A stretch of DNA of 32,000 nucleotides. Source: Paramicrosporidium saccamoebae KSL3 (taxonomy: Eukaryota > Fungi > Cryptomycota). Both the position numbers and the translations under genes were made by a program. Location: the NCBI GenBank assembly GCA_002794465.1, contig MTSL01000112.1, positions 28,173 to 60,172 on the forward strand, in the 5' to 3' direction. Below, piece by piece: positions 6,009 to 32,000 of this stretch. Every line of letters begins with the position of its first letter. Within the stretch, counting starts at the first letter, position 1. The notes under the pieces are model-generated. The model saw only the letters and a list, made by a program, of their open reading frames with translations, did no database searches and was not told the DNA's origin.

Positions 6009-9000
6009 ATGATTACAAATGAAGCTGTAGCGCAGCTACAACAAATCCTCGTGGGACTATCTTCCTCAGACAATTCGATTCGCGAGAAGCATGAACAGGC
6101 CTTTGAGCAAAACTGGATATCGCAACCAGAGGTTTTATTCCCAAGTCTTTGCATGGTGATCACAATGGACCAGACTCCTACTAGTCGCTCTTTAGCCGCC
6201 ATCATTCTTCGTCGGGTGCTTGGAAAGAGTATTCCTGCCCCGACTGGAGGCAAGAATGTTCGTCTGTGGAGCACCCTGAGTGCTGACGCCCAAAAGAACT
6301 GCGGGGAGACACTGCTCAATTCGTGGAAAGGCGAATCTGTTAAAGAGGTACGTAACAAAATTAGCGACGCCATTGCTGAAGTTGCAAGGATAGTTAATTT
6401 GCACGAAGAATGGCCCCAGCTACTCACTCTGATATGGTCTGTGGACGTGTCACAGCCGAGCGAGCTTATTGAGAGCTCACTCCGTATCTTGGCTGCTGTC
6501 CCAGAGTGCATTCAGAACCAAAAGGGAGAATTGGTTGCCTCCTATCTGATTCAGTTTTTCAATCATGCCGAGGTCCAGGTTCAACTGGCTGCCGTCAAGG
6601 CCCTCTGTGCGGTTGTCTCTGTAAGCAGCGACGATAAGAAGCAAGCATATGCTAATATTGTCAATGGGATCCCCAATATCCTGGCCGCCTTTGCGCAAGC
6701 ATCAGCGGAGGAGGCATTGACTGACTGCATCCAATCAATTGTTGAAATGGCGGATGATTGTCCAAAGCTGTTCCGTCCTCAAGCCACCCGTCTTGCTCCC
6801 GTTCTTTGCGCCATTACTGACTGCAAAGAGGGGCAATTTGAGGACGATACACGCTCTGTTGCCCTCGAATTGCTTACCACGTTGGTTGAAGTGATCCCTG
6901 GAACATTTAAAAAGCAAAAGGAATTGACAGGAACCGTTGTGATTCTGATATTAAAAATGATCAGCAGTGGCCTGGATGATGGCCAGGAATGGTATCAAAT
7001 CACGCCTGATGATGAATTTGAGGAGGAGGATCTCTCGCTCACCGCCGAGGCTGCTCTTGATCGTGTTGCTATTGCCTTGGGTGGAAAGACTCTACTTCCT
7101 TCGCTCATGTCTTCGATTCCTGGAATGATCCGTTCCTCAGAGTGGAAGCACCGCTATGGCGCTCTCCGTGCCATTGCCAATATGGCAGAAGGGTGTGCAG
7201 ATTTGCTTGAGGATCGACTGGAGGAACTATTGGGGCTTGTCTGGCCGTCCTTCAAAGATGCCCATCCCCGCGTCCAATATGCCGCTTGCCACGCGCTCGG
7301 ACAATTATGCACAGATTTTGCTGGTCCCCTCCAGGAACATTTTGCACAGCAATGTCTGGCCAGCCTTGTGGGGGTGTTGGTAAGCAGTAACCAGCCTCGT
7401 GTTCAATGTCACGCTGCTGCGGCCCTCATTAATTTTGCTGAAGGCGTCGATTCGGCTATTATTTCTCCCGTTCTCGATGGTTTGTTGGATCGTCTTGTTT
7501 CCTTACTCGGAACCAGCACGCTGTACCTCCAAGAGCAAGTCATTGCGTCAATGGCAGCATTTTCTTCCGCCTCGGGAGTCTCCTTTTCTCGTTTCCTTCC
7601 CCAGGTGATTCCATTGCTGATGAACTGTCTGACGAGCAACTTGGACAAGTCCTATCGCCAACTCCAATGTCGCGCGTTAGAGGCAGTGACGATGGTGGCC
7701 TTGGCTGTTGGGAAGGAGCATTTTCGTCCGTATTCCCAGCCGCTGCTTGATGTAATGGTCAAACTGCAGCAAGCAGAACACGACAGCGATGATTTGATTT
7801 TGGACTATTTGGCCCCTTCGTGGGTTCGTATTTGCCAGGTGCTGGAGACGGAGTTTTCTCCATTCATTCCCCTCGTCCTCCCGCGTCTTCTAAGCGATGC
7901 GGCTGCAGACCCTGACATTGCCGTCATTGATGCAGCCAATCCCACGGCTGAGGACGACTACGATCCCAACGAGTGGGAGTTTGCCACCATCCGTGGTCGT
8001 CGTCTTGGCATTCACACTGCAACTCTCGACAACAAGTGCGCTGCCGTTGAAAATTTGGCAGTCTACATTGCTACATTGCAAAAGGACTTTGCCCCATTTG
8101 CTGAGCAGACCTTTAGCACTGTTCTCCCCTTAGTCTCCTTTACCATGCACGAAGGAGTTCAGTCGGCCTCAGTCGAAGCTCTGGCGTCGCTCATAAAGGT
8201 GGTTTATGAAGCAGGAAAGCCATCAAACTTGGCTACTGTTAAATCCATGACACAGCAATCTTTGACTGCCATGCTTAGTCAGCTGCAAGAGTCGGGCGAT
8301 TCCGAGGTTCTCGTGTCTATCCTCGATGCGATGGCTGATATCTGTAACATTTCTAGTGGAGAAATTTTACCGGAAGGTTTATTGTATCAGTCTTTTGATG
8401 CCATCAATGCGCTTCTAACGATCCTTATGAGAAGCCAAAGTCGTTCATCTGCTCAGGTCGATGAAGATGAGGAAGATGACGAGGAGAAGCGGGCTGAGGA
8501 TGACGAAAATGTCATGTATGGGATTACCCGTTTGGCCGCTGCCCTCTTTAAATGTTTCAAGGAAGCGTCTCTGGCCCCCTCAGAGACTTTGCTAAAGTTC
8601 TGCCTAGGCTGCATTATGCCCGGAAAGTCTGGATTGCTCCCACATAGACATGCTGCCCTATGTATTCTAGATGATTTGGTGCACTGGCTAGGCGTTCATA
8701 CTTTTCCCATTCGGGACCATGTTGCGCAGTCATTTGCCAAAGGGTTGGTTGATGAGGATCCCGATAACCGCCAAGCTGCTGTTTTTGGCGTGGGAATGTG
8801 TTCCGAACATGCTCCTTCTGTGTATGAACAGTTCTGTCGAGGTACTATTTGATTGGTTGGTGCTGACTAGTATAGAAATGCTTCCCTTGTTGCTAAAACT
8901 GATCAGCCACCCAGATAGCAAAGCCCCGAGTGTCATTACAGTCACGGATAATGCCATGTCGGCTGTGGCTAGAATATGCCAGGCTTATGGAGTAGACCTG

Positions 9001-22576: not shown

Positions 22577-23563
22577 TTATTGTTGTTTTAGCTTTTTTGT
22601 GAGCTCTGGGAGGATCGTAAACAGATCACCTACCAGTCCATAGTCGGCAAATTGGAAAATGGGCGCATCCGGATCTTTGTTGATTGCAATAATGGTCTTG
22701 CTGTCTTTCATGCCCGCAACATGCTGTATCGCTCCTGAAATACCGATCGCAATGTACAATTTTGGAGCCACCACCTTGCCAGTCTGTCCCACCTGTAGGT
22801 CATTTGCCACATAGCCTGCATCTACTGCCGCCCTCGATGCACCGACTGCAGCCCCTAAAGTATCAGCCAGCTCGTAGATTAGCTTGAAATTATCGGCGCT
22901 CTTGAGAGCACGTCCTCCAGAGACTACAATCGTGGCTGCCCCAAGATCAGGACGATCTGATTTGCTCAGTTCCTCACTCTCCCACTTTGTCAGCATTTCG
23001 GCCGGTTCAGCTTTGTATTCCTCTATCGGTACTTGTGCAGTTGCCATCTCATCCAACTTGAAGGCAGTCGGCCTTACGGTAACAATGTTAATAGATCCGC
23101 TAGTTTTTACCGTGGTGATGGCATTTCCCGCATATATCGGCCGCACAAATGTGCTCCCGTCAACAACTTCTGTCACATCAGCCACTGGAGCAATGCCCTC
23201 TTCATCCTGCGCTAACAGTCCAGCCATCCTGGGCAGAATGTTCTTCCCAATAGAAGTGTGGGCTGCCCACCAGTGCGAGAAGCCGTGTTGTTTCTGCAAT
23301 GCTACCAAGAGTGGTGCGGTCACTTCTGGAAGCAATTTTTCATAGTTTGGATGTGTAGCTAAGATGACCTTTGTCAATCCAGAAAGTTTCTTTGCCTCCT
23401 CAATTACAGGCGATGTTGCATTGTCAACAGCCAAAACTCCGACCGCCTCACCGCCTGCCTTTCTTGCCGCTGCAATTGCCGCCAGATTTGCCGTGGCCAG
23501 TTTTCCTTTAGCGTGTTCTAAGAATATTGCTGATGAAATTTGCCGTCTCCATATACGAAACAT
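22577..23563 (-). CDS. ETFA: Electron transfer flavoprotein alpha subunit
   Basis: [75 protein letters not shown]. Confidence 0.97.
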
Positions 23564-23652
23564 GGTGACCGTGTCCTATGGACGTTAGTATAGACGAACC
23601 AGGGACCCCATAACAAAGACTTTCACACTACAAGCACAATTTACTTGTTACT

Positions 23653-25029
23653 CTAATGACGAGATGAGGCTAATTTGTCTCTTCGTTTCTTTACATGTTT
23701 CGGGGTCTTTGTCTTGCGGCGTTCCTTCTTCTCTGCCTTGACCTTGATCTTGTTTTCTTTCCTCAATTTCTTAATCTCTTCCTTACTCAATGGGCTTGAA
23801 TTTTCCAAACTATCCGTTTCATCTGGATTATCCGACTCGTCAGAATCATCCGAGTCACCAGTGTCGTTTGTCTCGTCAGAGTCGCTGGTATCGATATCTA
23901 GACCCATAAGCTTTGTGTAGAGCAGATTCTCGGTATCACCGGCCTGCATACAATCCACATCTCTCTCAATGTCAATAACTTCATCCAATGTTCTCGGAAT
24001 ATACGAATCCTTAAAGACTCGCTCTTCCACTTGATCTTGCGCATTGTCAGCAACAAGTTCCTCTTGGGACGCCTCATGTGCTCGTTGCAAATACTGCTCA
24101 AGATCGTTCGCCTTTAGATCGTAATCTGTCACAAAGTCAAACAGCCTCCTTAGCGTCAAGGTCTGCACTTGGTATTGTCTAAAGAACGAAATGACATTTC
24201 CACAATCATGACGTAAGAAATCCAATGCCCGCGGATGATCGTGCTCCACTGATTGCGACACGTCAATAATCACCAACTGTCCCTCATTAACCAACATATT
24301 GTACTCGCTCAGATCAGCGTGCACCAAGTGACATTCCTGGTACATGATGCGCATAATTCTGATGCACTGGTCGTACAACTCTATGGCCTCTTCGTATGTA
24401 ATTCTAGCGTCTTTCAGTCGGGGAGCAGGGACACCCTCCGAGTTGCCGATGAAGCTCATAAGTAGAATGTGCAACTTGAGCTGCAACGGTTCTGGTGACG
24501 GGATCCCCGCTACTTGTAAACGCTTCAGGTTACGAAACTCCTTCTCTGCCCACACCTGCACCATTTTCCTTGGGTTGTGTTTTGAATATCCCTTCCGGAA
24601 GCGGAATTCTCCCACGACGTATTTTTCACGCGACTTGAAGGTCAGGATTGTTGTCTTGTAAATCTTCAAGGCGTAATGTTCGCCAGTCTCGCCCATGGCA
24701 TGATAGACGTTTGCTTCTTTCCCAGTGCTCACACATCCGTTGATCTCGTAAATGACGTTCTTGTTGATCATTTTCAGCAAAATCATCCTCGTCCGCGGAT
24801 CTAGCACCTGCTCTGTCACTGCCCTATTGGCACGGTCTGTATACTGGTTGCGGTCCTTGTCCAGTTTTGGGTTGTTCAGCATGGCATAATGCTTTCCAGT
24901 GTCGTCGTTCAAGTTTATTCTCGCAGCAAGCCGTTCCAGATTCACTCCACCAGCGCCCACACGTCCCTCCTCTTTATTCAAGAGCTGCTCTTCAAGCTCA
25001 TCCAGGGAGTATTCACCTTCGGACGACAT
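23653..25029 (-). CDS. RIO1: Atypical Ser/Thr kinase Rio1
   Basis: TEQVLDPRTRMIL, STGKEANVYHA, WAEKEFRNLKRL, LVHADLSEYN, IDVSQSVEHDHP and a basic tail (KVKAEKKERRKTKTPKHVKK). Confidence 0.97.
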   Translation of the reverse strand: MSSEGEYSLDELEEQLLNKEEGRVGAGGVNLERLAARINLNDDTGKHYAMLNNPKLDKDRNQYTDRANRAVTEQVLDPRTRMILLKMINKNVIYEINGCVSTGKEANVYHAMGETGEHYALKIYKTTILTFKSREKYVVGEFRFRKGYSKHNPRKMVQVWAEKEFRNLKRLQVAGIPSPEPLQLKLHILLMSFIGNSEGVPAPRLKDARITYEEAIELYDQCIRIMRIMYQECHLVHADLSEYNMLVNEGQLVIIDVSQSVEHDHPRALDFLRHDCGNVISFFRQYQVQTLTLRRLFDFVTDYDLKANDLEQYLQRAHEASQEELVADNAQDQVEERVFKDSYIPRTLDEVIDIERDVDCMQAGDTENLLYTKLMGLDIDTSDSDETNDTGDSDDSDESDNPDETDSLENSSPLSKEEIKKLRKENKIKVKAEKKERRKTKTPKHVKKRRDKLASSRH

Positions 25030-25055
25030 TTTCGCGTACCCTGGTACTACCGAAC

Positions 25056-25838
25056 ATGAAAGTGGTTGCCCTAATCAGGCAAGTCTCATCATGAATATAA
25101 TTTAACAACCTCTGTAGTGGCGGAAAGGACAGCACATATAACATGATGAGGTGTGTCCAGGAAGGACACGAGATTGTAGCCCTAGCCAATCTGTATCCCA
25201 CAGAGAGCGAAGAGCTGGACAGCTACATGTATCAAAGCGTCGGACACGATGCCATCGTCGCTTATGCTGAATGTCTCAACCTTCCCCTCTATCGACGTGC
25301 CATCAGCGGCAGGCCAGTAAACCTGGAGTACGACTATGCACCAACGGAGCGAGACGAGGTGGAGGATCTGTATGAACTATTGGTCCAGGTACAGCGAGAG
25401 CACCCAGATGTGCAGGGTGTCTCCTCTGGCGCCATCCTATCGACATATCAGAAGAACAGAGTGGAGAATATTTGTCTTCGGCTTGGGATGACCTCTCTTG
25501 CCTATCTATGGGCTGCTGAACAGCACACCCTTCTCCAGGACATGATTGACTCTCAGCTGCAGGCCATTATCATCAAAGTTGCCGTCTTTGGACTCGACAA
25601 GAACGATCTTGGCAAATCTCTGGCCGAGCTGCAGCCCAAGTTGGTAAATCTGGCTGGAAAGTTTGGAATTAATGTGTGCGGGGAAGGTGGCGAATTCGAG
25701 TCACTGACCTTGGACTGTCCCCTATTTAAGAGACGACTTGTAATTGATGAAACAACTACAGTCATACACAAAGAAAGTGAATCTGCTCAAGTTGCATATT
25801 TAAAGATCACAAAATGGCATCTGGAGGAAAAGCAATAG
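25056..25838 (+). CDS. DPH6: Diphthine-ammonia ligase; join(25056..25078,25118..25838), 247 aa, GC-AG intron
   Basis: Splicing 25079-25117 restores the PP-loop MKVVALISGGKDSTYNMM. Also ELDSYMYQSVG, GAILSTYQKNRVE and CGEGGEFESLTLDCPLFK. Confidence 0.93.
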
Positions 25839-25943
25839 ACTAGTAAAGTGGTAAAGTAATAGAGTAGAGTTATTGTAATGATGATGTAATACTAGCTGTA
25901 AAGACTGAAGGACCCCTAGTCCACCATGTGCTCAATCACGAGT

Positions 25944-26462
25944 TTAGATTCCAGTGGAACCAAATCCACCGGCACCACGAACAGTCTCATCCAAATCCTA
26001 CGAGATTAGCAAAATGGTGCTGAATACCTCAACGACTTCAACGGGCGGTGTGGAGATTTGCTCAAGAATCAACTGAGCAATCCGATCTCCCTTTTTTATC
26101 TCAAAGGATACTTCATTGAAATTGAACAGGATCACCCCCAGCGGTCCTCTGTAGTCTTCGTCAATGACACCTGCTCCCACATCAATAAAGTGTTTGTGTG
26201 CCAGTCCTGAGCGCGGGGCCACACGTCCGTAATGGCCCGCCGGTATCGCCAACGAAATGTCAGTCGCCACCAGTCCTTTGCCCTTGGCGGGGATTGTAGT
26301 GTCAACGGCACTGAAGAGGTCGTACCCAGCCGACGATGCAGTACCGCGCTCTGGAGCGCGACCATTCTCGCTCAACTTTTTGATACGGAGAGCAGCAGTG
26401 GTGGGCTTTTGGATGGAAGAATCAACTGCGGGCGTCATTTTGGCGCGTTTCGGACTTGGCAT
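25944..26462 (-). CDS. DUT1: dUTP pyrophosphatase; complement(join(25944..25997,26028..26462)), 162 aa
   Basis: [35 protein letters not shown]. The 30-nt intron 25998-26027 separates motif 5 ([13 protein letters not shown]). Confidence 0.97.
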
Positions 26463-26659
26463 TAATTAATTATTTGTTGCCCTGAAGGAGGTTCGTAAAT
26501 TCATGGCCAGAACAATTGCTGGCTTGAAGTCGTAGCCCCTTAATCACCTCTGATACAAGAACAACTACACTGTTTCTGTAATAGCAAATAGTTAGTGGCA
26601 CAATCTGAAATTCAGGTGCTGACTCGAAATCGGCATGCACCGACTGACCGGGGATTGCT

Positions 26660-28334
26660 ATGACTCGGTTACTCGAAGACGACGGACAAGTGGATTTCAA
26701 GATCAACACAAAGTTTGCTGAAAAGTACCAGGAGAAGAAGAAGAAGGAAGAGTTGTCCATCCGTATGTTGTATCAGGAGTATTAAATGTTTAGTGGAGGA
26801 CAAGTACAAGGCCAAGCTGGCATCCAAGGGAGTAAAGCTGACATCCCACGGTGCTGTAGATGATGACGAAGAGTACAGCAGCACTGATAGTGAAGAGGAT
26901 GTGGTGGAGGATGAAGATGGAGAACTCGTAACACCGGCAGTCGAGGCGCAAATCTTGAGAACGTTGGCAGAGATCCGTTCTCGTGATGGCAAGATTTACG
27001 ATCCAAATATCAAGTTCTTCTCTCCCGAAGAGCTCCAGAAGGCAGAGGCAGAGTGGAAGGAGAAGAAGAAACATTTAAGGAAGGAGAAGCCGCTCAAGAT
27101 AAAGGATTTTCATAGAGAAAAACTGCTAAAGGGTCAGGCTGACAGTTCCGAAGAAGAGGAGCCAGTAGTCAAGACTCACGAGGAGGAACAGACCGATCTT
27201 TTAAAGGAGTTTAAAATGGCTGCAAATGCTGCCAACGATCAGGACGACGATGGTTTATTGACGATTAGACCCAAAACTGAACAAGAAGTTGCCCGTGAGG
27301 ATGAAGAGTACAAGAATTTTCTTTTGGAAAACTTGGCCAGCAATGAGAACGCTCGAGAGAATATGAGTGAATGGTTTGGCACTGCCTCGGGCCGCACCGC
27401 AGTCACAAACGATGAAAGCTTTCTCATTGAATATGTGCTGAACCGCGGATGGGTGGATAAGGACCGCAAGGCTATCCCAAGTTATGAGGAGATTATCGCC
27501 GAGGACGAGGAGGATGCCGACGCAGTGGACAAGATGGAAGAATTTGAGGAAAAGTACAATTTCCGATATGAGCAACCCGGAGGTGATCAGATTGTCACTT
27601 ATTCGCGTCAAATTGATGGATCCATGCGTCGTGAGGAGAGTAAGCGGAAGGAACAGCGTGCAGCTCACAAATTACGAAAGGACGAAGAGAAAGAGCGCCA
27701 GAGAGAGGAGCTAAAGAGACTGAAGAATCTAAAGAAGCAAGAGATTCAGGAAAAGTTGAAACGGATTCAGGAAATCTCTGGAACCAGCAAGCCCATCCAA
27801 GTTGATCTGGAAAGTGACTTTGATGCTGAGAGCCATGACAAAAAGATGGGGCTTTTATTCGATGACGAGTACTATAAAAACGACGACGAATCGAAGCCTG
27901 TTTGGACCGAATCAGAAGATGAAGAGCCAGTCAGTGAGGCACAAGCCAAAGTTCTGAGAAAGGCTGCCAAGTCGATTGCCAAACTTGCTAAAAAGGCTGC
28001 CGAGGAGGATAGACAACAAAAAATGAGTGAATACCTCGACGAATACTATCAACTTGACTATGAGGATATGATTGGTGGTGAGATTCCCTGTCGATTCAAA
28101 TATCAAAAAGTAAAGGCCACCACGTTTGGCCTAAAGGTGCGCGACCTTATTACAGCGGATGATGCAGATCTCAATTCGCACGTTTCGCTAAAGAAGTTGG
28201 CGCCGTATCGGCCGGCAGAGGTGCTGGAGGCGGACGAGGCGCGACTAGGTCACAAGAAGCGAGTGTACAAGTTTTATGATCTTGTCAGAAAGGATGGCCC
28301 CAAGACGTCAGTTCCAAAGAAAAAAAAGCAATAG
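26660..28334 (+). CDS. KRI1: 40S biogenesis protein Kri1; join(26660..26762,26794..28334), 547 aa
   Basis: FKINTKFAEKY...EELSILEDKY across a 31-nt intron. Also IYDPNIKFF, FLIEYVLNRGW, EFEEKYNFRYEQP, LDYEDMIGG.IPCRFKY and L...VSLKKLAPYR. Confidence 0.92.
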
Positions 28335-28371
28335 ATTTAAATAATACAGTGCAAATGTTATGCTGACCATA

Positions 28372-28620
28372 ATGGATCTGTTATACAGTGTCTGCATATC
28401 ATTATTGGTGACTCCGACTCAAATAGCGATCCCATAAGCCGCATAGTCTAACGGAATTATTTCGCTCACCAACAAAGTCTTTGCCGATTAGATCATATTG
28501 GTGCACGAGAGTATGTCCTTATTAAAGGCGTCTTTATGGGTCTCCATCCTCAAGATGATTAAATTGGGGGATATATATCTAGGCCGGGTTCGTCAATAAT
28601 AAGTGGATACTGTTTAAAAG
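28372..28620. repeat. Dispersed repeat family 1, copies D (+, about 28372-28436) and E (-, about 28516-28620) in convergent inverted arrangement
   Basis: D: ttattggtgactccgactcaaatagcgatcc is the reverse complement of the A/C core. E: caataataagtggatactgttta and aaaggcgtcttta match A and C. Confidence 0.72.
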
Positions 28621-28704
28621 ATTATTTAGTCTGACCATAATTCTGTGACAAATATATTCAAGGGGTTCTGCCATGCCCATATAGATCTGTTGGAAAGACT
28701 CCCC

Positions 28705-28766
28705 GGTCGACATATACGGGTCGACATACTGGTTGACACACTGGTCAACATACTAGTCGATATATT
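28705..28766. repeat. 12-bp tandem array (5 units) ending 5 bp upstream of the SIZ-like ATG
   Basis: ggtcgacatatacg, ggtcgacatact, ggttgacacact, ggtcaacatact, agtcgatatatt. Confidence 0.8.
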
Positions 28767-28771
28767 GGCAA

Positions 28772-30349
28772 ATGTATAGCCCCCCTTGGGTAAATTATGA
28801 GCAGGCTCTTAGAGAAAACTTTCGTGATCCTTCCACAGGAGCGTACTACGATGAGAGGCAGATGCGAGAAACTTACGGGGAGGGAGGTTATACGGACGAT
28901 GAGGACGATTATGGAGAAGCCGACTACGGGTATGAAGCCAGGATTCTTGGTGGATACCATGGTCAGTATGGTGCCATAGCCCAACACCGTGACGAAACCT
29001 CTTCACAAGATTCGTGCGACCTGTACGACACGTCATACCCAATTCATGAGCTCCAAAATAACACTGAACCGCAGACTATTAAGAAACTGGTCCAAATGTG
29101 CACCATTCCCACGTTAAAGGCGATTCTGACACGATTGGGACTGGCAAAGAGTGGAAATAAGCCTGCATTAGTTGAGCGCGTATGTGCAGAGGCGGAGAAG
29201 AGACGACACGACCGGACACTGTTCAATGCGACTATGACCGCTTTTAACGAATTCTTCGCAAACTCTCGCGACGGTCGACGTCCATTTGCATTTTTGCCAA
29301 ATCCTTCCTATTCAAAGAGAGTGTTGGAGGCTAGCGCCAAGTATGCGGACCTGGACTATACTCTGCCATTTCCCTGGATACTGGAGCAGAAGCTGACACC
29401 ACCCATTCTGACATCTGCACTGAACAATCGGGATCCATTCCAGCTCGCTTTCAACAAGGAAAACGAGCCTGGTGCCAGATATCTGCTAGTCGCCCTCAAA
29501 TTGTACAGCGAGGCGGAGAGGAGGACAAAACAAAAGCCGGTTTATCGACATGCTTATTTGAAAATATTCTCATGCCACTTTTCCACATCCCGTTACGACG
29601 GCCGTTACCCAGTCAAGAAAGACCACGATATTACGCACCTTCTTAGGACGGGATCGAATCAGTGGCATATGCTGAATGTTGGCGAGTTAGCGTATCAGGA
29701 CTACTTATTGCAAATCGTCAAGGCGCGCCGTGATCTCCCCTCCTGGACGCGCACAATCAATGTAAAGAGTTCGACTGAGATATTGCGACGGTTGCATCTG
29801 GAGGCTGAGAGGGCGAATAAGGATGGGATATCGTCTCATGCGGTGACAGTGTCGCTGCGATGTCCATTGTCGCTGCAAAGAATGACCACGCCCGTCCGTT
29901 CGAAAAAGTGCAAACATGCACAATGTTTCGACCTGTCATCTGTACCACGTGATTCTGCCGGTGGGATAATGAAATGTCCCATATGCGACGTTGTCTGTCC
30001 TCCAGACTCGCTCTATATTGATGGTCTTGCCCTGGAGATGCTGCAGTCGACTGGAGACGAAATGCTTATCAATGCTGACACGGAAACCTGGAATTCAACC
30101 GAGATTAAAGCAACAACCAGTCCTGTCGATCACTCCCTAATAGATCTGACAGAGTTGCCCGATGATCCTCCTGAAGATGCGAACGCAGAGTCTGTGTTTA
30201 TCAAACCCGATCCTGGAGGAACGGAAAATGAAAATGTCTTGCCTGCCGCGGGGTTAGTCTTATTGGATGCAGAAACGGACGTTATTACGAATCCAGGAAT
30301 CCGACAAATGCTAGGAAGGACAATAAGGGATGCCATTGTTTTAGATTGA
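28772..30349 (+). CDS. SAP + SP-RING (MIZ zinc finger) SUMO E3 ligase, Siz/PIAS-like, divergent
   Basis: SAP-like TIPTLKAILTRLGLAKSGNKPALVERV; SP-RING VSLRCPLSLQRMTTPVRSKKCKHAQCFDL...KCPICD; PIAS-type SIM LIDLT followed by acidic residues. Confidence 0.82.
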   Translation: MYSPPWVNYEQALRENFRDPSTGAYYDERQMRETYGEGGYTDDEDDYGEADYGYEARILGGYHGQYGAIAQHRDETSSQDSCDLYDTSYPIHELQNNTEPQTIKKLVQMCTIPTLKAILTRLGLAKSGNKPALVERVCAEAEKRRHDRTLFNATMTAFNEFFANSRDGRRPFAFLPNPSYSKRVLEASAKYADLDYTLPFPWILEQKLTPPILTSALNNRDPFQLAFNKENEPGARYLLVALKLYSEAERRTKQKPVYRHAYLKIFSCHFSTSRYDGRYPVKKDHDITHLLRTGSNQWHMLNVGELAYQDYLLQIVKARRDLPSWTRTINVKSSTEILRRLHLEAERANKDGISSHAVTVSLRCPLSLQRMTTPVRSKKCKHAQCFDLSSVPRDSAGGIMKCPICDVVCPPDSLYIDGLALEMLQSTGDEMLINADTETWNSTEIKATTSPVDHSLIDLTELPDDPPEDANAESVFIKPDPGGTENENVLPAAGLVLLDAETDVITNPGIRQMLGRTIRDAIVLD

Positions 30350-30390
30350 GATGAGATGGGGTGAGACGAGATGAGACGAGATGAGATGAG
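30348..30390. repeat. Imperfect (GAGAY)n pentanucleotide microsatellite
   Basis: gagatgagatggggtgagacgagatgagacgagatgagatgag, starting within the SIZ-like stop codon. Confidence 0.8.
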
Positions 30391-30659
30391 TTGTGTAAAA
30401 ATTATTTTATGGTGATAACCGTGGGGTGAATAATCGTGGAATGGACAATGAAACACGCCACCACGCAAACACGCAATTACGCAACCATGTAATCACGCAA
30501 CCCCCCATCCTACCCCAAAAGACTATTACAGTGTTTTTCATGTCCAGATAAAGGGTTTTTGAATATGTACATACATGGGTTATGGGGATGTTACTGCTCA
30601 AAATGGACAACATTTCCTAAAAAGACGATATAACCAATGTGTTTACGGGGTGCAATGCC

Positions 30660-31937
30660 ATGCTGCTCCGTATATTGCCTTTCGTCCTTGCGGTGACGGG
30701 ACTCCGAGTCGCGATCCGCTCGGGTCTCGCCCACCCGCCAAAGCTCTCTGCATTGCACGGCTATAAAGTAGAATCGCAGCCTACTAAAAACAAGCCCAGC
30801 GAATCAAGTAGCACGGAATTATCTGAAGCGGGTGCGGTAACGAACAAGTATAATGTAACAGCTCTTGCGGAACCCCAGGGCGATCAGCAGTTTATCCAAA
30901 AACTCGCTCAATTCCGCCAACGCCTCTTTCCTGATGGTATGCAACTCGATCAACAGCTGATGGCGGCGGATCAGATGAACAGTCCGGCGCTGTTTGGGGA
31001 CGATCGAGCCATTTCTTGGTTCCCGGTGCAATGTAGCACTATGGGACTTGATCTTCGCGTTGTCAGTACTCTGCAAGAGGCAAAGGATATACGCAGTAAT
31101 GCAGTGTACAAGGTACGCGATCAAGCCACTGGAAAGTTATATGTTCTCAAACACGCTGGAAAAACCGAAGACTATTCGGCCGAGGTGGGCTTTTTAATGG
31201 TTGCAAATCATCCGCTCTTTGTGCGGCCAATCTGCATCCAACGCGAACGACGAGGAGCAAGACGGCCGGGAATTGTGTTGGAATATATTGCAGGAGAACA
31301 TTCTGACGAGTATGCAAAACGTGCCACCACCACTGTTGCCGATCTCCAGAGACTCTCTGCACAACTGTTGGTGGCCCTCAAATATATGCATAAGATTGGC
31401 TTTGTGCACGGCGATCTGAAGCCGGGAAACGTTATGGTCAAGAAAAATGGCGAGTTGGTGGTCATTGATTTCGGCTATACGGCGCCCTTCCCCAATACCC
31501 GTCCGAATAGAGGGAATCCCTCCATCAAGGCCCCCGAGTTGAGCGGACTGATTACCGGCGTATTGGACGAGGCGTTGGATATGTGGGCCTATGGCAGCGT
31601 GTTGGCCACCTGGTATTCGTCCAAGTATTTATCTCCCATCCCAAAGAGATACGCCATGGTCCATATCGGCCATCATCGCGACTATAGTTTCAGTAGTGTT
31701 CCAACCAAATATCCCGCGGACCTACGTGCCGTCCTTTATTTGATGATGTCGCCTTCTCCGCCCATGCGACGATTCCGTAATGTCAAGACGCTGCAAATGT
31801 TGCAATCAATGGCATTCTTCAATTCGATTGATTGGCAGGCGTTGGACAAGAACTTGTCCGCTCTGTATCAAAAGAGAAAGAAGCAATGGAGGAATCCCCT
31901 TTCCGTCACGCCAAATGCTGTGCTAGTCGGAAATTGA
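30660..31937 (+). CDS. Divergent AGC-like Ser/Thr kinase with an N-terminal signal peptide-like sequence, 425 aa
   Basis: First ATG at 30660 (MLLRILPFVLAVTG). AVYKV...YVLK, alphaC Glu (YSAEV), HGDLKPGN, DFG, APE, DMWAYG and an AGC-type FFNSIDWQAL tail. Confidence 0.85.
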   Translation: MLLRILPFVLAVTGLRVAIRSGLAHPPKLSALHGYKVESQPTKNKPSESSSTELSEAGAVTNKYNVTALAEPQGDQQFIQKLAQFRQRLFPDGMQLDQQLMAADQMNSPALFGDDRAISWFPVQCSTMGLDLRVVSTLQEAKDIRSNAVYKVRDQATGKLYVLKHAGKTEDYSAEVGFLMVANHPLFVRPICIQRERRGARRPGIVLEYIAGEHSDEYAKRATTTVADLQRLSAQLLVALKYMHKIGFVHGDLKPGNVMVKKNGELVVIDFGYTAPFPNTRPNRGNPSIKAPELSGLITGVLDEALDMWAYGSVLATWYSSKYLSPIPKRYAMVHIGHHRDYSFSSVPTKYPADLRAVLYLMMSPSPPMRRFRNVKTLQMLQSMAFFNSIDWQALDKNLSALYQKRKKQWRNPLSVTPNAVLVGN

Positions 31938-32000
31938 GTATTGTATACTCGTAGTTTTATCGTAGTAGCTAACACACAATATGAGATTTGTAATCCATGT

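Follow-up and report, generated by a model that had tools for sequence, protein, structure and literature searches.

A gene on the plus strand of a stretch of the Paramicrosporidium saccamoebae KSL3 genome probably encodes a catalytically competent serine/threonine kinase of PKA-like (AGC) descent, relocated to the secretory pathway. The stretch, referred to here at its full length of 32,000 nucleotides as 'the window', comprises positions 28,173 to 60,172 of contig MTSL01000112.1 (assembly GCA_002794465.1), and the gene occupies window positions 30660-31937. P. saccamoebae is a rozellid parasite that lives inside the amoeba nucleus. An earlier interpretation of the window, made from its letters (the 'sequence-only reading'), had described the gene product as a secreted effector kinase, exported to the host and possibly to its nucleus if the organism proved to be an intracellular parasite, and had pointed to a basic patch near the C-terminus as resembling a nuclear localization signal (NLS). 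The intranuclear lifestyle of the organism, the AGC/PKA origin of the kinase, the constraint on its catalytic residues and an N-terminal signal that recurs throughout its family all agree with that interpretation; the proposed NLS is not supported.

Gene model and family

The gene is an intact open reading frame (ORF) of 425 codons plus a stop, with its ATG at 30660 and its TGA at 31935-31937. We consider it a complete coding sequence on the combined evidence of the ORF itself, the NCBI gene model deposited on this contig (which specifies an identical 425-residue protein) and a match to the hidden Markov model (HMM) of the kinase family described below (E = 1.1e-135), the sole such match among the ORFs of the window, which thus holds a single family member. 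The stop-to-stop frame opens at 30621, with an in-frame stop close upstream, and 30660 is its first in-frame ATG, so that a longer N-terminus would be impossible without splicing. That the start codon is correctly placed is further indicated by the orthologues, which likewise open with a hydrophobic N-terminus. No upstream exon, other start or orthology to a conserved cytosolic kinase, each of which the sequence-only reading had named as speaking against it, was found.

Every motif quoted in that reading is present in the protein: the hydrophobic N-terminus, the glycine-free ATP loop, the beta3 lysine (K164), the alphaC glutamate (E175), HGDLKPGN (residues 250-257), DFG (residues 270-272), GNPSIKAPE, FFNSIDW and QKRKKQWR (residues 404-411). 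We aligned 52 sequences of the family (alignment A2; column counts are given out of the sequences without a gap at that position). With the exception of the basic tail, the features of the kinase go beyond chance, because they are kept in relatives: asparagine stands at position 147 in 48/52 sequences, arginine never stands at position 251, and Cys125 and Cys192 are found in 45/45 and 52/52 sequences, respectively.

The relatives were collected by an exhaustive profile search over protein cluster representatives, in which 57 representatives matched at E ≤ 1e-30, a number that rose to 1,111 at E ≤ 1e-10. Most of the top matches have 360-470 residues, and they align from upstream of the kinase core through the FF..DW motif at its end. 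The gene is therefore no orphan, and we rejected the idea of a lineage-unique gene on the basis of this search; the family of signal-peptide kinases that the sequence-only reading had suggested looking for does exist (36 of 42 full-length members carry a signal-like N-terminus, as described below). Sequence identities across the aligned family drop to about 25%. A word-index search, saturated by generic kinase words and capped at 8,000 candidates, overlooked nearly all family members; among the matches listed, two relatives were close (75% and 59% identity) and no other exceeded approximately 31%. Scanning a collection of bacterial and archaeal genomes with the orthologue alignment gave no match, which for such a collection carries no information. 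Each of the 30 representatives that we looked up occurs only in Logan, ENA or JGI metagenome/SRA assemblies, with no NCBI or UniRef entry among them. We found no paper mentioning such kinases in this lineage and none combining 'Paramicrosporidium' and 'kinome'; the P. saccamoebae genome paper and a review of zoosporic-fungus secretomes hold nothing on secreted or protein kinases of this species. [quoted passage not shown] Divergent kinases secreted by intracellular parasites are, as a kind of protein, already known.

Kinase domain

The catalytic domain spans residues 126-395 and ends at FF..IDW (window 31035-31844; this and all further features of the gene lie on the plus strand). The Pfam Pkinase family matches residues 148-326 (E = 2.7e-22) from profile position 14, indicating that the match starts after the glycine-rich loop. 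When the family profile was compared with the PDB, the best match was the yeast PKA Tpk1 (E = 3.4e-36), PKA being matched over chain residues 8-274 and 42-308, and the best 60 profile matches listed were all PKA or RSK chains (the latter being RSK N-terminal kinases). A search with the single sequence likewise returned AGC/PKA relatives, and the top ranks of a Foldseek search against the PDB were occupied by Trypanosoma cruzi AEK1, PKA and CK2alpha. An AGC origin had previously been read from the FF..DW motif; it is now well supported by the sequence, profile and fold comparisons. The AGC C-terminal tail is missing: Pfam gives no Pkinase_C match, 33 residues follow FF..IDW in the P. saccamoebae protein, and most family members stop within approximately 10 residues of FF..DW. 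Descent from a PKA-type AGC kinase, with loss of that tail, is accordingly the well-supported interpretation of these sequences and of the model described below.

The ATP loop between strands beta1 and beta2 (residues 140-147; window 31077-31100) is degenerate, as the sequence-only reading had stated, and contains no glycine at any of the three GxGxxG positions. Its replacement is itself conserved. The third glycine position is asparagine (N147) in 48/52 sequences, positions 145-146 are mostly lysine or arginine across the family, and V149 is found in 44/52. Position 141, an alanine in the query, is still glycine in 27/52 sequences, and query residues 142-144 form a three-residue insertion that is absent from most members. 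In an AlphaFold model of the protein, strands 132-139 and 148-154 on either side of the loop are retained as a hairpin.

The residues that carry out catalysis in canonical kinases, reported as intact in the query by the earlier reading, are also nearly invariant in its relatives (K164 and E175, 51/52 each; D252, N257 and D270, 50/52 each). The catalytic loop HGDLKPGN (residues 250-257; window 31407-31430) further retains H250 in 51/52 and K254 in 48/52 sequences. Elsewhere in the domain we observed G272 (51/52), P292 (52/52), E293 (51/52), D307 (51/52), W309 (50/52) and R370 (52/52). Constraint of this strength leads us to regard the kinase as probably catalytically active.

An opposing interpretation is that the protein is a pseudokinase, in which loss of the glycine-rich loop abolished nucleotide binding and left a scaffold or decoy. 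All three loop glycines are indeed gone in the query, and the Toxoplasma WNG study (PMC6442604) describes secreted parasite relatives, such as BPK1, that are pseudokinases. The same study describes WNG1 as active without a glycine-rich loop. K164, E175, D252, K254, N257, D270 and G272 are each kept in 48-52 of the 52 sequences at identities that fall to about 25%, a pattern that implies selection for catalysis, and the replacement loop is conserved around N147 and the basic residues at 145-146. We consider a pseudokinase extremely unlikely.

Position 251, immediately before the catalytic aspartate, is alanine in 33 sequences, glycine in 12 (including the query), serine in 5, cysteine in 2 and arginine in none of the 52. 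The whole family is therefore of the non-RD (lacking the arginine of the arginine-aspartate pair) type, extending to its relatives what had been noticed in the query. The activation segment (residues 270-294, from DFG to APE; window 31467-31541) is bounded by the near-invariant D270, G272, P292 and E293. Its P+1 position, residue 286, is threonine in 30 and asparagine in 16 of the 52 sequences, the query belonging to the latter group, and the usual phospho-acceptor position of the activation loop would seem to hold neither serine nor threonine in the query.

Pre-kinase extension and invariant cysteine pair

We built an AlphaFold2 model with alignment A2, with a mean predicted local distance difference test score (pLDDT) of 87.6 and a predicted template modeling score of 0.82. 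The model comprises a helix at residues 5-20, disorder at residues 23-67, and one compact fold from approximately residue 68 to 415 that includes a C-terminal helix (residues 392-411). The sequence-only reading had described the region between the N-terminus and the kinase as a linker of approximately 110 residues. That description holds for residues 23-67 (about 45 residues; window 30726-30860), which have pLDDT values below 50, cannot be aligned and vary in length among orthologues, whereas residues 68-125 form a folded extension that is conserved in the family.

This pre-kinase extension (window 30861-31034; pLDDT above 90) consists in the model of two helices (residues 76-89 and 93-105) followed by a W120-x-P122-x-x-C125 segment. 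Its conserved columns include F78 (30/43) and L89 (37/43), the conserved phenylalanine and leucine of an amphipathic helix upstream of the motif, together with W120 (35/45), P122 (32/45) and C125 (45/45). The motif, of the general form W-x-P-(V/I)-x-C, ends at Cys125 (codon at window 31032-31034), which is invariant. A second invariant cysteine, Cys192 (codon at window 31233-31235; 52/52), lies on strand beta4 (residues 190-193 in the model). The query contains no cysteines other than these two, and nine family members contain this pair alone. From this pattern of conservation we infer a disulfide between Cys125 and Cys192.

N-terminal segment

The first 22 residues (window 30660-30725) form a hydrophobic segment that is probably a signal peptide. 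In the query, R4 is followed by an uncharged run of 11 residues (I5-L15), the Kyte-Doolittle mean reaches 2.94 in the best stretch of 8 residues, and residues suited to the -3 and -1 positions of a cleavage site place candidate cleavages after residues 13, 14, 21 and 24. Judged heuristically on explicit sequence features, the query displays those of a cleavable signal peptide: a positively charged n-region, an uncharged hydrophobic h-region within the range of 7-15 residues, and small side chains at -3 and -1. When a simple signal-peptide rule was applied to the 42 full-length members of the family (the set used for all N-terminal statistics), it identified 36, as compared to 12 of 67 long ORFs from the same loci that do not belong to the family (Fisher p = 1.5e-12). 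Those ORFs replaced an initial control of lower-ranked kinase matches (18/81), which was contaminated by probable family members. The signal-like N-terminus that had been noticed in the query is thus a trait of the family and not an accident of one start codon.

The uncharged runs have a median length of 15.5 residues and are 8-18 residues long in 26/42 members, which is the length of a signal peptide rather than of a membrane anchor. No full-length member (0/42) ends in a KDEL/HDEL-type signal, and neither of the two members scanned for a second hydrophobic segment (P0001 and P0003) contains one. Taking together the N-terminal signal, the lack of either of these features and the invariant cysteine pair, we regard entry into the secretory pathway as the best reading.

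Were the segment instead to remain uncleaved as an anchor, in the membrane of the endoplasmic reticulum (ER) or the mitochondrial outer membrane, the kinase would face the parasite cytosol as a tethered signaling enzyme. The charge distribution is compatible with such an orientation (mean charge of +1.10 after versus +0.64 before the run across the family, and +3 versus +1 in the query), the best 19-residue Kyte-Doolittle mean of the query, 1.96, exceeds the classical threshold of 1.6, and 13/42 members have uncharged runs of at least 19 residues. Most runs, however, at 8-18 residues, are too short to span a bilayer, and that of the query is 11 residues long and flanked by arginine. The invariant cysteine pair, with no further cysteine in the nine members mentioned above, is ill-suited to the reducing cytosol, and the disordered linker, long and differing in length between members, is of a type common in secreted pro-regions. 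An anchor is for these reasons an unlikely explanation.

We also weighed a mitochondrial presequence, possibly bipartite, that would make this a mitochondrial kinase. The first 37 residues of the query hold three arginines, two lysines and no acidic residue, and P. saccamoebae possesses a complete respiratory chain and a fully functional mitochondrion. Against this, the helical hydrophobic moment, taken across 18 residues, is as low as 0.83, the hydrophobicity of the core (I5-V12) far exceeds that typical of presequences, and acidic residues appear by position 25-33 in the orthologues P0003 and P0014. The N-termini of the wider family are classical signal peptides with acidic or polar residues directly after them. 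We judge mitochondrial import to be very unlikely.

The hydrophobic segment of the close orthologues is followed by a short motif ending in [SA]-G-L (residues 15-23 of the query; window 30702-30728). It is located at residues 21-41 in P0001, P0003, P0012/P0160, P0013 and P0014, has a chance expectation of 0.034 per protein, and does not occur in most members of the wider family. The motif could represent the context of a cleavage site, or a sorting or processing motif. No processing-site arginine of the kind expected of a presequence is conserved before it (P0012 has alanine and P0014 glycine at that place).

C-terminal basic patch

The patch QKRKKQWR (residues 404-411; window 31869-31892) lies in the C-terminal helix and resembles an NLS in that, from residue 405, it matches K-[KR]-x-[KR], a loose pattern for monopartite signals. 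It underlies the most specific form of the effector proposal, in which a soluble kinase is released into the host and steered to the host nucleus by KRKK. The evidence for secretion would serve this proposal as well as it serves a kinase that merely enters the secretory pathway, and the parasite does manipulate a host nucleus. The patch, however, is not conserved beyond the query and its closest relative: columns 405-411 are gaps in 41-46 of the 52 sequences, the patch is absent from four of five positional orthologues (P0003, P0160/P0012, P0013 and P0014), and no other family member has an NLS pattern in its last 40 residues, with P0002 keeping the patch loosely. It is placed within a confidently predicted helix (392-411; pLDDT of about 91 for residues 401-410) instead of a flexible tail, and the same pattern occurs in 10 of the 25 long ORFs of the window. 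Given this frequency, the orthologues without it and the confident helix, the patch is best taken, on both alignment and model, as incidental. A parasite that secretes from within the nucleus would, moreover, need no NLS for its products to reach the nucleoplasm. We therefore did not retain the NLS, and we regard NLS-guided delivery as quite improbable.

Genome neighborhood and evolutionary rate

The kinase gene occupies the same neighborhood in four other assemblies (L002, L004/L005, L008/L009 and L013), in a block with the order ETF-alpha, RIO1, diphthamide synthase (Dph6), Kri1, SAP/SP-RING, kinase and WD40 that is complete or partial depending on the locus. The syntenic genomes span 44% to 59% G+C. 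Relative to its syntenic orthologues, the kinase shows 39-59% identity, as compared to 54-71% for RIO1, Dph6 and Kri1, while the SAP/SP-RING gene reaches 32-39%. The kinase thus evolves moderately faster than its housekeeping neighbors, without runaway divergence, and on these identities we rejected rapid divergence of the kind associated with effectors. Being single-copy and syntenic in five genomes as well, the gene resembles an arms-race effector less than the sequence-only reading had assumed.

The immediate upstream neighbor and synteny anchor is a gene with SAP and SP-RING (PIAS-like) domains (window 28772-30349, plus strand; Pfam zf-MIZ, 4e-14, and SAP, 4.8e-06), which is separate from the kinase gene and lies upstream of it in L002, L004, L008 and L013. 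Between the two genes are tandem repeats, with approximately 8.8 copies of TGAGA (30347-30390) and approximately 6 copies of a AAACACGC-type unit (30451-30500). Two out-of-frame ATGs closer to the kinase (30637 and 30655) share one frame, and a short upstream ORF (30637-30696) overlaps the kinase start codon. On the other side, the deposited contig stops 63 bases after the kinase (window 31938-32000), which explains why the WD40 gene, next to the kinase in all relatives, is missing from it.

Synteny extends beyond these neighbors, in that a block of approximately 10 genes (window 22577-31937, with an NTE/patatin gene further on) keeps its order across L002, L004, L008 and L013, and the SRA-derived relatives that share it look like additional Paramicrosporidium-like genomes. 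Two deposited gene calls within the block join adjacent genes: RIO1 with ETF-alpha (777 residues; window 22577-25029, L001 1918-4370) and Kri1 with SAP/SP-RING (1054 residues; window 26715-30349, L001 6001-9690). Each pair corresponds to separate long ORFs in the window and to separate genes in L004 and L008, and the fused models are probably annotation artefacts.

Distant family members are found elsewhere in tandem arrays of three, in activated sludge (L006/L007) and in a JGI metagenome (L010). In the first array (L006 10001-14136, also present in L007), two of the three members are each called as a small signal-like ORF and, some 40-50 bases on, a kinase ORF, an arrangement that points to short introns or breaks; these split ORFs were scored one by one against the family HMM, without being joined. 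The second (L010 661-6640) consists of two signal-bearing members (447 and 465 residues) and a third gene whose 910-residue product matches the pre-kinase extension region twice. The gene content around distant members is that of compact eukaryotic genomes, and a 282-kb contig with another family member carries ordinary eukaryotic genes. Neither the window nor the retrieved loci showed anything of human or viral appearance.

Proposed mechanism and significance

We propose that the N-terminal signal would take the kinase into the ER, where it would be cleaved and the protein would fold. The pre-kinase extension, with its two helices and Trp-x-Pro-x-x-Cys segment, would pack on the N-lobe, and the putative Cys125-Cys192 disulfide would pin the Trp-Pro segment there, where it may take over the stabilizing role played in cytosolic relatives by the AGC tail with its hydrophobic motif. 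ATP would be held by the glycine-less hairpin loop through Asn147 and the neighboring basic residues. The non-RD catalytic loop, together with the apparent lack of a phospho-acceptor at the usual site, suggests activity without phosphorylation of the activation loop. Lacking both another membrane segment and a KDEL/HDEL-type ending, the kinase should leave the ER, and its destination may be the secretory compartments of the parasite, its surface or spore wall, or the host nucleoplasm following release. Release into the host nucleus is plausible, since the parasite lives in that nucleus and ordinary secretion would suffice.

Several observations weigh against this reading. The signal-peptide heuristic is a crude one that also picks out 18% of background ORFs. 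The close orthologues have a short hydrophobic segment, which is interrupted by arginine in the query and weakly hydrophobic in P0003 (best 11-residue mean of 1.57). The stretch that follows the segment is net-basic, with no acidic residue before position 38 in the query; a short segment followed by such a stretch means that, for the close orthologue group, a presequence or a reverse signal-anchor also fits. Our literature search found no expression, proteomic or localization data for the kinase. The pattern of conservation would suit a housekeeping kinase of the secretory lumen equally well, and a single-copy, syntenic gene with a moderate rate of evolution is an unusual signature for a host-directed effector.

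A bolder form of the proposal is that these proteins are an undescribed, independently evolved and exported family of PKA-derived kinases of intracellular Rozellomycota-type parasites, constitutively active beyond the cytosol of the parasite, lacking the glycine-rich loop and using a disulfide-locked Trp-Pro-Cys segment in place of the AGC tail, and that the single P. saccamoebae copy passes directly into the host nucleoplasm and phosphorylates host nuclear proteins. We put this forward tentatively and consider it doubtful as a whole. If true, the family would be a convergent counterpart, in the fungal lineage, to the WNG and ROP kinases of Apicomplexa.

Apicomplexan parasites use divergent kinases that they secrete as central tools, and to our knowledge none from the Rozellomycota-Microsporidia lineage has been characterized beyond genome-level counts. 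The gene described here anchors a coherent family of clear PKA-like ancestry that would have gained a signal and a cysteine-tethered extension and lost the glycine-rich loop, the arginine of the RD pair and the AGC tail. For kinase biochemistry, the family may be a second case, independently arisen in nature, of catalysis with no glycine-rich loop, here with the beta-hairpin kept; for parasite biology, the gene is a single-copy, positionally conserved candidate at the interface of an intranuclear parasite and the host nucleus. The family profile can also be used to survey uncultured rozellids in metagenomes.

Comparison with known kinase systems

The PKA/AGC kinases are nearest to the query in sequence and fold, with an alignment that spans the whole catalytic domain to FF..DW. 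Unlike them, the query family carries a signal sequence and a cysteine-tethered N-terminal extension, and the query lacks the C-terminal tail, the glycine-rich loop, the RD arginine and, apparently, a threonine at the usual activation-loop site.

FAM20C, Fjx1 and VLK/PKDCC are metazoan secretory-pathway kinases bearing signals or anchors that fold with disulfides, phosphorylate lumenal proteins and have atypical kinase-like folds. They provide a model for a luminal destination of the query kinase. We rejected membership in the FAM20/VLK group, given a canonical Pkinase match and fold neighbors consisting of PKA, AEK1 and CK2alpha; Pfam gave no Fam20C-type match for the query, only canonical and generic kinase-like families. 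A further point of comparison is Phytophthora CRN8, a kinase effector that is secreted and builds up in the nucleus of the host. Its N-terminus is of the modular CRN type and bears a translocation motif, and its kinase is of the RD type; no relationship to the query kinase was detected, no search having been aimed at one.

The ROPK kinases of Toxoplasma and the FIKK kinases of Plasmodium are divergent, often non-RD proteins with signal peptides and N-terminal extensions that are exported by intracellular parasites, and ROP16 is a rhoptry kinase that reaches the host nucleus. The tandem, lineage-specific arrays of distant members of the present family resemble ROPK and FIKK expansions. The P. 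saccamoebae kinase, in contrast, is single-copy, syntenic and unexpanded, and its likeness to these families is one of lifestyle only. No ROPK chain was present among the best PDB sequence or fold matches listed, on which ground we rejected ROPK membership, and the string FIKK is absent from the query.

In the Microsporidia, the sister lineage of Rozellomycota, expanded kinase families are enriched in signal peptides or transmembrane domains (Reinke et al. 2017, PMC5423893); the same study lists single Pkinase proteins with signal peptides from Anncaliia algerae. We liken these families to that of the query by description only.

The nearest functional analogue of the query kinase is the WNG family of Toxoplasma. 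As described in the WNG study (PMC6442604), these kinases are secreted and active without a glycine-rich loop, a role in holding ATP is proposed for basic residues close to the lost loop, and the family is conserved across a parasite lineage rather than hypervariable. The study also reports that a helical lid takes the place of beta1 and the loop, that the strand order of the N-lobe is changed, and that the DFG motif of WNG1 has an acidic residue (E457) in place of glycine. The model of the query, unlike WNG, keeps the beta1-beta2 hairpin, and the DFG glycine (G272) is present in 51/52 family sequences. These differences, together with the finding that no WNG or BPK1 chain was among the best 60 PDB profile matches or the best 50 Foldseek matches listed, led us to reject WNG membership. 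We conclude that the resemblance between the two families is one of convergence, with an independent, AGC-derived origin in Holomycota as opposed to Apicomplexa.

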